DNA of 64,000 nucleotides, taken from contig JALDTO010000155.1 in assembly GCA_023515725.1 (NCBI GenBank), positions 157,091 to 221,090 of the forward strand, in the 5' to 3' direction. The notes below the pieces were generated by a model. It was not told the origin of the DNA, searched no databases, and worked only from the letters and a program-made list of their open reading frames with translations. The position numbers and the translations under genes are program-made. This document shows, piece after piece, positions 2,958-61,165 of the stretch (the stretch's first letter is position 1; each line of letters begins with the position of its first letter). Source of the stretch: Amoeboaphelidium protococcarum X5. Its lineage: Eukaryota > Fungi > Aphelidiomycota.

Positions 2958-3154
2958 ACGGCCATTGTATAATAGCACCAGACCGCAGACATTATATATG
3001 GCGTTATTTTGAATGGCCAAGCCATTATTTCCAATTTAGTGATCGCGAGGCACCTCAATTTAACACACAGGAGAGGAGGAGCGCCCCTTTAAATATCAAT
3101 CAAACAAATTCCTAAAACATAAATTGACTTTCTCTCATTACAACTTCATTAAAG

Positions 3155-4681
<1,527 letters not shown>

Positions 4682-4878: not shown

Positions 4879-6345
4879 TCAAAACCAGACATCGTGTACT
4901 TTCCCTGTGGAGCCATCAGTTTTGATAAATTGCCCCTTTTGGCCATGGAGAATTCCATTTTGATAATCGTTTGGAGTCTCAAGATAATTTTTGACATCCA
5001 CATACATTGCAATGCCCAGTGGTTCAATAACCTTGACGTTATTTCGAGCAATGAACCCAAAATTGATATTGAGTTTCTGGCGGAGGCACTTTTTTATAGC
5101 CTGTAAAGCAACCATACTTTCGTTATGGAATGCACCATCACAGCCGTTGCCGTCAATTTCCTGTGCCAGCAGTTTAAGGGCCACAAAGCCATTCCGTGCT
5201 TTGTAGGGTTTACGCGTAAATGGACTAATAGTGAAATTACCAAACACTTCTTCGATATCGATGACACCATTGCCATTGATATCAGACATGGCCAGCATTT
5301 TGTCACCATCAACAGCTCCACCATCTCGGTCATTCACCTGTTCTGGTTCCAGAGTGATTCCGACACCTCGCTTAGCAGATACTTTACCATCATCGTTCAT
5401 ATCAAAAATTAGGGGAGACCCGTCACCGCCAACAGAAACCCCGGAATCAAAAGTTGGAAAATCATTTGGGGGAGGCTCCCCAGCAGGAGGAAAAGGACTT
5501 GGAAGAAAGGACCATTTCTTCTTCAAAAATGGCTTACTTTCATAATCAGGATTCATCCACCACAATTTATATTCCTCCATCGAAGAAAATCCGGAAGGAA
5601 CTGGCGGTGGTTACCAGGTAGGATAGTTGGGATTGTACGATGGTGGAAACTAAATAGGTGTTGATGGCGTTGCACTTTCCGGCACTCGCGGTTAAGTGAC
5701 TGATGCAGATGTTGATGGCTTGCGTGTCCGAGTACCTGTAGTGGTAGGAGGACGGCTAGAGGATTTGCTCTTTAAAGGAGGCAACGAATCAGTAAATGTA
5801 ATGGAAGGCACATTATATTAGCTCTTAATGACTGTACTCGTAATTGACGATTTAGAGCGATAAGGCGTCTCTTAACGACTGCCAGTAAATGTTGCAGTAC
5901 TATGAGAGTTTGTATGAGCAGAACTGGAGCGATGCGCTGATGGCAGTGGAGAGGATGGTACGTTAATAGATTACGTCTGCAAAGGCTCATCAGTAGAACT
6001 TGCTGATGGCCATGAGCCAGATGTCATGGTAACAGACGGTAAAGAGGCTCTCTTAGACGATTATATAGACTGAGAGGTAGGTACTAGCGCGGTTTAACTG
6101 CTACTACTACCACTTTTAGAATTTACTCTTGTAGTTGAACAGATTGAAGATGAGGTATAGACAACAGATTCACTACTACTACATGGTGTGCTAGAAGAAT
6201 AGGAGGATATAATAGCAGAAGCAGATGAATCAGAGCCGCGCAAGCGACACTTTAATACCACAGCTGGCGTGGGATCCGTATTTCCAGGCAATGATAACAC
6301 GCAAGCAAACAGCGAATGGAAAAGATATCCCAGAATTAACAGCAT
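4879..6345 (-). CDS. secreted Ser/Thr/Pro-rich protein with C-terminal FrpC self-processing-module-like Ca2+-binding domain, 488 aa
   Basis: One continuous frame under table 6: signal peptide MLLILGYLFHSLFACVLS, mucin-like stalk, then SPLIFDMNDDG...DINGNGVIDIEEVFGN...NGFVAL...GQFIKTDGSTGKVHDVWF, TGA. Confidence 0.8.
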
Positions 6346-55712: not shown

Positions 55713-56480
55713 TCATAAGAAAGCAAACAATATCAAAGATAATATTTGAGCACATCCACCGATACCAACCGCGATCCCGGAAGACATTATGCCATTTTTA
55801 CCTCTTGGGCCTCCTGTAATCGTGTCATTCTTCTTTTCCGTATCGCTCAGGTTCAACTATGGCACATCAAATGCAAAAGTGCAATTAGTTGAATTAGAAT
55901 CTGCAGGATCGCATTCAAGAGTCTTATTGAAAATATCCCCTGAAGATGATGTCATGTTAACAGATGGTTTTGTGTCTTGCATCTTCTTTGAATCACCAAT
56001 TAATGGAGCAGATGGCGATTTAGTATCTGGCTTAGTTGATTCACTGGCCTATCGCTCAGGCGATTTAGATTATTCGGTCATCTTCCCACCACTACCGCTA
56101 CCACTACCACCGCCTGCACAGTCAACCACTGACCACTTGATATTCTTTAACCTCCCCACGCCGGTGGCCGCCAATTTGATAAAAGCTTCTTTAGATAGAT
56201 CAATGTCATTCTCAGCACATCCGGCACAGGAATCAACCACCTTAGCCATAATAGTAGTACCAGATGGGCCAGTCACCTGAATACATTTACCACAAGACGC
56301 GTCGGAGTTCATACGCGCAAAGGAAACAGCCACCGCGGCGGGTAGATCTGCCGTAGAAACAGAGATTCCCTTCGACAAACATGAAACACTCGCGCCCGCT
56401 GTCAAATCATAATACGTCAGCTCACCGACATAGGCCATCGACACTTTCAATAATAACTGTATCGCAATAATATACTTCAT
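55713..56480 (-). CDS. secreted RlpA-like double-psi beta-barrel (expansin/loosenin-like) protein with probable GPI signal, 255 aa
   Basis: Signal peptide, GELTYY, SCGKCIQV, KVVDSCAGC..DIDLS..AF, Ser/Pro linker, hydrophobic C-terminus. Confidence 0.88.
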
Positions 56481-56810
56481 TTTAGAATTGATTTTTTAAA
56501 AATATAGCCTTTGAGATAAAAAATACCAGTTTGTTTCAAAATTTAATTTAATTGAAATTGAAGATTTAATTGTCGTGATACAATCGAATCGATCTTGTAA
56601 TCATTCTTCGTAATGTGACACCAGAAAGTGATCATCCAATCATAAGTACGCAAATCAGCGTTGCAAAGACTATGTTTTAAACGAAAGCTGCTTGAATTCT
56701 TACTTCTACTATTGTGAAAGTGCCACCATGTAACCATAAACTAAAAATGAAACACGTCAGGTGCAAATGTTATAGAAACAAATTACGTTATTAACTTTTC
56801 ATGTATAAGC

Positions 56811-58186: not shown

Positions 58187-59383
58187 TCAATTAGACGGAA
58201 CAAAAAGCAGCTTATTAGGTGTGGTCTTGTCGGATCTAGAAAGTTTAATGACATTCGGAGTTGCCAGATCCAAAAGCTTCCCCGTGAGCTCGTCAACGTT
58301 CAAAGACGGCGAAGAGCTAGCAAGTAAAGCTAAAGCACCTGCAACATGAGGCGATGCCATTGAAGTGCCAGAAAACGATTAAAACTTGTTTCCTGGAGTA
58401 GCTGCCAGTATATCTTTGCCTGGTGCAAATAGATTGCAGCATCTTCCGCGGTTGGAGAAATCAGCAATTTTGTCATCAGTGTCGGATGCGGCCACAGTCA
58501 GGACAAAGTCGTAGGCAGCAGGCAGTGAGTAACACGCATCACCGTATTCGTTACCCGCAGCCACTGCGAACAAAATGCCGGAAACTGTAGCAATTTGCAT
58601 AGCTCTTTCCAGAATCTTGCTTTCGCCGGGGAAGCCAAGTGACATATTGGCAATATCAACTTCTGAACGGCCTCTGCGAGCTCGATCTTTAATTGCAAAT
58701 TCCACGCCACCCAAAATGTCAGACATGAAGCACCTACCATTTCCACTACAAACTTTAACAGCGACAACTTCGGCACTTTTCGCCACTCCTGACAAAAAAC
58801 CACCAACGGTGCTGGCAACGTGGGTACCATGACCATTGTCATCAGTATCAACACCAATGTAGAAAGATATTCCATGGCGCGCATTAGTGGAGCCATCAGA
58901 TCTTTAGAATTCAGAGTGCTTCACATCAATACCACTGTCGATAATGTACACGGTGGTGCCATTGCCAGCATGGGCTGGATAAGAGTATGACTGATGATTT
59001 TTATCATTCATGCGCTGGGAAATACGTGTTAACCCCCAGTTTTTAGGATTAGATTATTCACCAAAGATGTGTCCGATCTTATTCGGTTCCACGACATCAA
59101 CCTCGGGCATATCGCGTACCATAGCGATCAGATAGTCGTCCATTTTTGCCGCATATCCAAAGGAATACTTATGCATAACAGGATTATGGGTAGGCTCTGC
59201 AGATGCAGCCAGACCAAAGACGCGATGCAAGTGATCATCAATGAGCGCGTCTTTAGAATATGTACTTAGATACTCATTCTTCAAGCTGACGATATATTCT
59301 CCAGGCACTTCATTGTCACTTGTCTAGATATAGGACGCAGCACTAGTGGCCACCAGGCATAAGAAGACAGAAGTATATAACAT
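58187..59383 (-). CDS. secreted subtilisin-like serine protease (S8A, proteinase K type) with I9 propeptide, 398 aa
   Basis: Signal peptide, VPGEYIV, YIIDSG, DNGHGTHVA, AAGN, SGTSMASPHVAG, TPNKLLF. Confidence 0.95.
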
Positions 59384-59968
59384 AGTTATTCCAGTGCAAA
59401 TTGTGTCAAGGAGAAAAAGATAAGTAGCAAAGATTAAAGATGCAACTCTTGGCTATATAAATTACTCACTAAAATCAGCATTTTGTATCTATATGCATAG
59501 CTTATAAGCTCAAATTATAAATTATAATGAAACGTAAACTCATAAATATAATTATGGTGATAAAGAACTAGTCATTGTCTAGAAGGAGCCATATTCATTG
59601 CGACTCTCCCGGCAACATTGAGAAAGTATCTAATCACAACCTTGAAGGCAATCAGTAGTGATTGTTGTTAAACTTGTTGTATTGAGAAATTAAGAGACTC
59701 TTCAATACAAAGATTTCCTAATAAGTTACTTAACATTCTTCGTATTGGATACTCTCTTTCACTATACGCCACTTGTGGATGGTGAAATCCTTCAAGTACT
59801 ACTCCTGACTCAAGACCATGAGAAAATCCGCGCGGTGTCGCTAATATAAGCTAATCAAGCCCCTTCTTATAGCCTCGATCACATCATTTGAAGGTCTTCC
59901 TCGCTTCCACTTCTTATCATTCACAATCTCTTATCACACACTAAGTCTTTTTAATCTTTACCAGCATT

Positions 59969-61165
59969 ATGATCAAGAGTGTATTATCTTTGGCATTGCT
60001 TGCAGTTGTCTACTCTGCTCCTACTTAAAGCAATGACGCGTTCGAAGTCGTGCCTGGTGAGTTCATTGTTGGCCTCAAGATGGCTGAGTCTATGGACAGC
60101 AGTAACTTCATCGATGATCATCTGCAGCGTGTCTTTGGCCTGGCTGCATCTGCTGAATCTACCCATAATCCGGTCATGCACAAGTACTCATTTGGTTATG
60201 CTGCCAAGATGGACGACTATCTGATGGACATGGTACGCGCTATGCCTGAGGTTGATATCGTGGAGCCTAATTACATTGGTTATGTGGTGGGTGAGCAGTC
60301 TAATCCTAAGAATTGGGGTTTGCTGCGCGTCTCTTAGCGTATGAATAGCAGAGGACATAAGACGTACTCTTATCCTGATCATGCCGGTAATGGTACCACA
60401 GTGTACATCATAGATACTGGTGTTGATGTGAAGCATTCCGAGTTTAAGCGCGCTGATGGTACCATTAACGCGCGTCATGGTATTTCCTTTATCAGAGGGG
60501 TTGAGACTGACGATCATGGCCATGGAACTCACGTCGGCAGTACTGTGGGTGGCCTCCTAGTTGGTATTGCCAAGAGCTCCGAGGTTGTCGGCGTGAAAGT
60601 CTGTAATAGTTACGGCGGATGTGCAGTTTCTGATGTCATCGCTGGTGTCGAATTTGCCATGAAAGACCGTGCTCGCAAGGGACGTACCGACACTGACATT
60701 GCCAATATGTCTCTTGGATGGTCCGCTACCATTAGAACTCTGGAGCGCGCCATGAAGGCTGCTACTGATAGTGGTATCTTATTTGCAGTTGCTGCCGGTA
60801 ATTCTTATGCAGATGCATGTTATTTTACCCCTGCGCAGTTTAGCTTCGTGGTGACTGTCGCTGCATCTGGCATTGACGACTCTGAGGCATCATTCACTAA
60901 TTATGGAAAATGTTGTGATCTGTACGCGCCTGGTGTTAACATCTATGCTGGTGTCCCTGGTAATAGATTCCAGCAGATGTCCGGTACTTCCATGGCTTCT
61001 CCGCATGTTGCCGGAGCTCTGGCTCTACTGGCGTCTGGTAACAAGGCCGCTAGTGTCGAAGAGTTGAAGAGTTTGCTCTTGGAATAGACCACTGAGGGTG
61101 TAATTGACGTGTCTTCATCCCACAAGGAAACTCCTAACAAGCTTCTGTTTGTTAGCCCTCAGTGA
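59969..61165 (+). CDS. secreted subtilisin-like serine protease (S8A, proteinase K type) with I9 propeptide, 398 aa
   Basis: Signal peptide, VPGEFIV, YIIDTG, DHGHGTHVG, AAGN, SGTSMASPHVAG, TPNKLLF. Confidence 0.95.

Follow-up and report, generated by a model that had tools for sequence, protein, structure and literature searches.

A Ser-Pro self-processing-module domain of Melainabacteria type on a putatively secreted stalk protein of the aphelid Amoeboaphelidium protococcarum

The self-processing module (SPM) has so far been described only in bacterial RTX proteins carrying Asp-Pro at the cleaved bond, and is the basis of NeissLock protein ligation. In a 64,000-nt stretch of the genome of Amoeboaphelidium protococcarum X5 (hereafter the window), an aphelid parasitoid of green algae, a sequence-only reading had recognized an SPM like that of FrpC at the end of a stalked, secreted protein, and had proposed that it joins its stalk to other proteins by Asp-Lys clip-and-link. 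What does such a domain do in a eukaryote? At stake is whether it is a passive Ca2+ module or brings a new chemistry of autoprocessing, in a 27-copy family of a pest of algal mass culture. What is new is a eukaryotic, probably aphelid-wide, expansion of an uncharacterized Melainabacteria-type Ser/Cys-Pro SPM; as the earlier reading had supposed, no eukaryotic SPM is described in the literature searched, which fell short of most subscription journals.

An SPM fold at the tip of a stalk

The gene is real, intact and under selection (Table 1). Its 1467-nt frame (6345..4879, minus strand) holds eight in-frame TAA/TAG codons, every one in the stalk, and standard-code ORF calling breaks it up, recovering only the last 233 aa. 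Internal stops within the A. protococcarum RPC2 and ArgRS genes agree with the reading of TAA/TAG as Gln, and paralogs of the window protein are held in NCBI as hypothetical proteins of this species. Single-sequence and profile searches of the genome found 27 copies of the domain on 8 contigs, all with intact frames and a common layout. RPC2 and ArgRS are themselves present in two copies, so genome duplication has probably left many of the SPM copies in pairs. Between paralogs, dN/dS is 0.03–0.20 for the domain, which is under purifying selection, and 0.30–0.61 for the stalk.

Table 1. Features of the SPM gene in window coordinates; residue numbers are those of the encoded protein unless FrpC is named.
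Feature	Position	Strand	Remarks
Whole gene	4879..6345	-	single uninterrupted frame, 488 aa + TGA, with TAA/TAG = Gln
Putative signal peptide, aa 1 to about 18	6292..6345	-	hydropathy; paralogs with similar N-termini
KCRLR motif, aa 32-36	6238..6252	-	just past signal peptide; kept in most paralogs and environmental homologs
Ser/Thr-rich low-complexity stalk, aa 37-240	5626..6237	-	7/8 TAA/TAG Gln codons
Pro/aromatic linker, aa 241-305, with short predicted helix, aa 256-264	5431..5625	-
Site D308-G309-S310-P311	5413..5424	-	S310-P311 where FrpC has D414-P415
SPM domain, aa 310-488	4882..5418	-	PF26745, Melainabacteria-type subfamily
Incomplete EF-like Ca2+ loop D315-G320 (FrpC D419-G424)	5386..5403	-	completed by D348 (FrpC D456, 5302-5304)
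EF-like Ca2+ loop D355-E366 (FrpC D462-E474)	5248..5283	-	intact
Helical insertion region	5086..5142	-	in place of FrpC EF3/EF4
D485, equivalent of FrpC D579	4891..4893	-	fifth Ca2+ site at scissile bond

The Gln codons of the window gene (4882-6345) number eight TAA/TAG and two CAA/CAG in the stalk, as against none and seven in the domain. Over the 27 paralogs the TAA/TAG share is 61% in the stalk and 47% in the domain (p 0.001); the sharp split is thus peculiar to the window copy, and mutation of Ser TCA/TCG to TAA/TAG codons within the stalk could account for the trend.

The terminal 179-aa domain, with which the protein ends, is an SPM by sequence and by fold. A phmmer search of the PDB matched it to the FrpC SPM (6sjw) at E 1.8e-8 and about 24% identity, with Pro311 aligned to FrpC Pro415. 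The five sequence blocks on which the earlier reading had based the homology are all present and collinear with the FrpC module, and the homology holds. PF26745, the Pfam model named SPM, is precomputed on paralogs and homologs, and the Atlas feature matches of the domain are all SPM; our local Pfam and NCBIfam scan returned weak EF-hand matches only and no SPM, the Pfam copy being probably older than the SPM model. The profile and structure comparison that had been suggested gave the same answer. Foldseek of the AF2 model (pLDDT 94) against the PDB matched only 6sjx/6sjw (E 9e-8), and VIA placed it on the FrpC SPM with Z 14.9 and rmsd 2.8 over 139 aa (TM about 0.55), the runner-up among 48,161 representatives standing at Z 3.2; no Hint, SEA or GAIN fold rose above that value in the same set. 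As in the SPMs of FrpC and ApxIVA (Neisseria meningitidis and A. pleuropneumoniae; 6sjw, 6sjx), an N-terminal Pro strand pairs, by alignment, with the C-terminal strand. Unlike in those proteins, the aphelid domain is C-terminal, and an ER signal peptide and a low-complexity stalk lie N-terminal to it. A search for RTX repeats and a T1SS signal gave no RTX match, and the protein stops at the SPM domain. Together with a hydrophobic N-terminus (best 9-residue hydropathy window 2.5, by hydropathy only), this upholds the proposed secretion by way of the ER in a protein devoid of RTX repeats. We found neither a transmembrane segment in the window protein nor an anchor at its C-terminus.

The N-terminal half was only partly as described earlier. 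Instead of about 290 aa of mucin-like stalk, there is a Ser/Thr/Pro-rich stretch (S+T+P = 50% of the stalk), for which we infer O-glycosylation, and then about 55 aa that are rich in Pro and aromatic residues, not mucin-like, and include a short predicted helix. Besides the window copy, only its twin (L002) and P0014, a close relative from another strain, show the linker with this helix. A genome search with the first 80 aa recovered only the gene and its twin, with no SPM-less relatives bearing the KCRLR motif, at low sensitivity. An environmental homolog (L067:612-2633, plus strand) has four tandem K-C-R-P motifs behind its signal peptide, as if the motif were a unit that can be repeated, possibly to allow polymerization through disulfides.

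The scissile site and the calcium sites

We took the Ca2+ site definitions and the roles of FrpC residues from the work on that protein (PMC7078468). By alignment, two of FrpC's four EF-like Ca2+ sites are kept (D419-G424 with D456, and D462-E474), as are G477 (here G369), G491 (G386) and D579 (D485), so that ligands of the fifth site appear to be retained. The partner of D579, D478, is matched by Asn or Asp, here N370 (5236-5238), and Asn at this position is tolerated in FrpC (PMC7078468). Two port residues are altered, L475 to Val and W451 to Ala. The sequence-only reading had both the scissile site and the second EF region remodelled. The first holds, D-G-S-P standing in place of D-P, but the D462-E474-type loop is intact, and the actual losses are the EF-like loop in the dispensable T430-G450 region, EF3, EF4, W451 and W519 (PMC7078468). 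The last four are absent throughout the clade of Melainabacteria and aphelid sequences. In the helical insertion that replaces W519, EF3 and EF4, two residues, C402 and C420, are kept in 24/24 paralogs tabulated and may form a disulfide.

The chemistry of FrpC requires the Asp side chain (PMC7078468); its D414A mutant neither cleaves nor ligates, and Gly, Asp or Pro ahead of Asp-Pro nearly blocks its cleavage (PMC7846742). When the copies were counted and their sites recorded, as had been proposed, 21 of the 27 had Ser-Pro, six Cys-Pro and none Asp-Pro, and the window copy has Gly309 directly ahead of S310-P311. The Ser codons at the site fall in both the TCN and AGY boxes, and Cys (TGY) is the sole other state in the genome.

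Ser-Pro had been read as a eukaryotic remodelling; it is in fact the commonest state among bacterial relatives, RTX proteins included. Among 140 non-redundant relatives, a sample ranked by likeness to a Ser-Pro query, in which Ser may be commoner than across all of the Pfam family, the residue ahead of Pro is S in 106, D in 25, C in 5, T in 2, and G and A in one each. Ser also occupies the position in 89% of the more distant, largely RTX-type outgroup. One of S, D, C or T is thus found in 138/140 relatives, and Asn in none, compared with 7% Asn in the flanking residues; the tree requires at least 13 switches from D to S/C/T. Gly stands ahead of the site in 30/111 S/C cases and in 0/26 D cases (p 0.001 raw); tested on 6 independent pairs, this covariation loses its significance (p 0.5). 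Loss of the site accompanies loss of the D579 equivalent (2/5 versus 3/138; Fisher p 0.009), a figure that depends on two divergent sequences. There is, then, a gap in the bacterial family also: most relatives found are Ser-Pro, a form for which we found no paper with a test, a mention or a report of cleavage in the literature searched.

Bacterial kin and spread among aphelids

Across 185,579 prokaryotic genomes, the closest named matches were proteins of Melainabacteria/Gastranaerophilales at 41–50% identity, and the best Atlas structure match was a Melainabacteria cluster (TM 0.91). In a 61-row IQ-TREE phylogeny, in which RTX-type SPMs from the search stood in for the absent FrpC and the long-branched L072 was omitted, the eukaryotic sequences form a single clade (100/99), joined to the Melainabacteria subfamily on a long branch (100/99). 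The node that separates the two placements, nested in or sister to the Melainabacteria members, has only 56/41 support. Forcing the eukaryotes together with the RTX-type SPMs was rejected (p-AU 3.7e-5). The phylogeny that had been called for bears out a bacterial origin of the domain, with one eukaryotic clade beside bacteria, but it does not group that clade with the RTX-type SPMs found. The closest kin are C-terminal SPMs of Melainabacteria, which leaves FrpC/RTX proteins, the source first supposed, unsupported.

The window domain belongs to this Melainabacteria-type subfamily, a supported clade with a common helical insertion and loss of W451. The uncharacterized bacterial members (Vampirovibrionia, Gastranaerophilales) share with it a C-terminal position and the absence of EF3 and EF4, and are mostly Ser-Pro (72%), with Asp-Pro in a quarter. 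They differ in their N-termini, which are Gly/Asn RTX-like repeats or Gln/Ala-rich tracts in place of a signal peptide and S/T/P stalk, and in an extra DxDGDG loop, present in the Melainabacteria members and the outgroup and missing from all eukaryotic members. This pattern, with Melainabacteria outside the eukaryotic clade, favours a single transfer from a bacterium to an aphelid ancestor, and we consider it likely that the ancestor acquired the domain from a Melainabacteria-type bacterium. With so patchy a subfamily, occurring in about 7/401 genomes of the class, the evidence points to a type of donor and not to a particular one. Vampirovibrio, a predator of algae, belongs to the class (PMC4451040), and an algal niche common to bacteria of this class and aphelids is plausible, which does not imply that Vampirovibrio itself has the domain; its genome paper does not mention RTX (PMC4451040).

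Several Melainabacteria genomes (G001, with L034 and L037; G002; G011) each encode multiple C-terminal SPM proteins, and one of these genomes has Ser-Pro and Asp-Pro forms side by side, a ready-made pair for comparison. One contig labelled Muribaculaceae (L023) falls within the Melainabacteria SPM clade and is possibly mis-binned.

A search of 1.84 billion representatives returned more eukaryote-like SPM homologs; a second, started from P0036, returned P0036 alone. Contigs of these homologs bear IFT122, RPC2, ArgRS and Brr6-like genes. One adjoining RPC2 clusters with A. protococcarum and Paraphelidium at 100%, which identifies that contig as aphelid; the remaining contigs appear aphelid-like by tree position and architecture only. 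The family is thus apparently spread across aphelids. Most eukaryotic homologs have a signal peptide, a K/R-C-R/K motif and a Thr/Ser/Pro stalk. Two environmental eukaryotic sequences have Asp-Pro at the site. L071:1975-3693 (plus strand; ENA ERZ19026022), a member of the eukaryotic clade, has the full architecture and T-R-D-P with its second Ca2+ loop disrupted, and would suit canonical clip-and-link better than the window gene does. L084:108-1665 (plus strand; JGI 3300081888) has a signal peptide, an R-C-R motif, a Thr-rich stalk, a hydrophobic segment and Asp-Pro, and its frame is broken near 1165-1190 by a frameshift or assembly error.

A calcium-folded head, or a second chemistry?

The explanation we favour, at a little under an even chance, is that the domain is a non-cleaving, Ca2+-folded head on a glycosylated stalk that serves in attachment or the cyst wall; a non-cleaving Ca2+ module had been the fallback of the sequence-only reading. 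An aphelid ancestor would have fused the acquired domain onto an ER-secreted stalk, and the head would fold on Ca2+, within the ER or extracellularly. An aspartic anhydride almost certainly cannot form where Asp is missing. Ser/Cys-Pro would then act as a structural cap in the port, leaving the chain uncut or cut by an ordinary dibasic protease, and the folded head would be a non-covalent binding or assembly module at the tip of the spacer, whose N-terminal Cys could form disulfides. Aphelids attach, encyst with a chitinous cyst and penetrate the host through an infection tube (PMC3975115), and a likely location would be the wall of the cyst, the infection tube or the pad that attaches the parasite to the alga.

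Besides the loss of Asp chemistry and the Gly ahead of the site, several observations fit a non-cleaving head. The domain exists without cargo, both in eukaryotic P0107, where a signal peptide and about 5 residues precede it, and in bacterial Atlas clusters of stand-alone SPMs (176-205 aa). Two eukaryotic members with Ala at the site retain the domain (and lack the D579 equivalent), and a dibasic KR/RR lies within 25 residues upstream in 13/27 paralogs. Within the secretory pathway, part of an Asp-Pro SPM is already cleaved beforehand (PMC12538545); such early cleavage in a Ca2+-rich compartment speaks for a form that is silent, or slower, in a protein exported through the ER. Against it, the near-exclusive S/D/C/T at the site, with no Asn, is what one would expect of a nucleophile more than of a plain Ser/Thr/Asx cap. 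The role in attachment or the cyst wall, moreover, is suggested by architecture (spacer, head and N-terminal Cys) and lifestyle only; the main texts of two papers on A. protococcarum infection (PMC8657485, PMC9343445) and one on Aphelidium zoospores (PMC11767097) mention no RTX, calcium, mucin or adhesion.

A second explanation, which we hold to be possible, if tentatively, is that Ser/Cys-Pro SPMs self-process by an acyl shift through the Ser hydroxyl or Cys thiol. Folding on Ca2+ would strain the port, Ser/Cys would attack the preceding carbonyl (an N-O or N-S shift), and the resulting ester or thioester would be hydrolysed or would hand the stalk to an amine or hydroxyl, giving release or a covalent glue. 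Hint, SEA, GAIN and Ntn domains use N-O/N-S acyl shifts. Hedgehog Hint, SEA and GAIN domains and Ntn hydrolases likewise open a secreted C-terminal domain with Ser, Cys or Thr, often after Gly; the likeness is a functional analogy, since we found no relation to them in sequence or fold and identified no conserved His or general base in the SPM. Only hydroxyl, thiol and carboxyl side chains are used at the site, and Asn, which caps turns and would be a one-step intermediate, never is. The repeated switches from D to S/C/T, the change of Ser codon box with Cys as the only alternative in the genome, the retention of Pro and of the fifth-site ligands, the joint loss of site and D579 equivalent, the excess of Gly ahead of S/C and the C-terminal position of the domain, as in Hint, all point the same way. 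However, the shift would act one bond upstream of the strained 414-415 bond of FrpC, the two covariations carry the weaknesses given above, and members without cargo exist. A Cys at or near the site may also sit in an ER disulfide, a Cys lying just upstream in many copies, and no paper that we found reports cleavage at a Ser-Pro SPM. That Ser/Cys-Pro SPMs, the commonest form among the relatives found, make up a second, undescribed class of Ca2+-triggered self-processing, which aphelids expanded to glue wall and attachment glycoproteins covalently or to release them, is a stronger proposition that we hold to be slightly less probable. It would place an ester or thioester in a fold where Asp-Pro yields an anhydride, and aphelids would have taken the Ser/Cys-Pro form from Melainabacteria, a class with an algal predator. 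If self-processing is true, the domain offers a possible ligation tool that survives the secretory pathway.

A third possibility, that the head is an effector or enzyme acting on or in the algal host, cut loose by a Kex2-type protease or borne on the stalk, is doubtful. The expansion of the family in a parasite, the upstream dibasic motifs and the stalk-less P0107 would suit it, but it calls for an activity of a sort not yet known for the SPM fold. Apart from the Ca2+ ligands there is no catalytic signature, SPM is the only fold matched, the low dN/dS of the domain denotes conservation and not the fast change typical of effectors, and Ca2+-dependent folding suits the extracellular space.

Canonical FrpC clip-and-link, in which an anhydride at D308 or another Asp would join the stalk to a Lys, can hardly be sustained. 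It has in its favour the Asp two residues upstream in the window copy, and Asp-Pro in the two environmental sequences and in some Melainabacteria members. However, D308 is out of register with FrpC D414, is followed by Gly and not Pro, and is not conserved among paralogs; with Asp414 itself replaced in every copy and W451, W519, EF3 and EF4 gone, the Asp-Lys reaction first proposed for the window protein is very unlikely. The protein is a member of the SPM fold family outside the clip-and-link class.

Bacterial contamination or a chance low-complexity match, to which the bacterial affinity of the nearest non-aphelid relatives and the absence of TAA/TAG from the window copy's domain might point, is excluded by purifying selection and by the 2–6 TAA/TAG codons in the domain of every other paralog, alongside those in the stalk, the 27 copies on 8 contigs, the eukaryotic neighbours (IFT122, RPC2, ArgRS) on independent contigs and, as regards chance, the fold match at Z 14.9.

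Within the window, the downstream neighbour of the SPM gene (3128-4681, plus strand) resembles a PH-domain AGC kinase (Akt/PKB-like) and would be a eukaryotic gene. Farther along are genes for three secreted-looking proteins: two (58187-59509, minus strand; 59822-61165, plus strand) whose N-terminal translations resemble subtilisin-like proteases, and one (55713-56600, minus strand) whose N-terminal translation resembles an expansin/DPBB-like protein.
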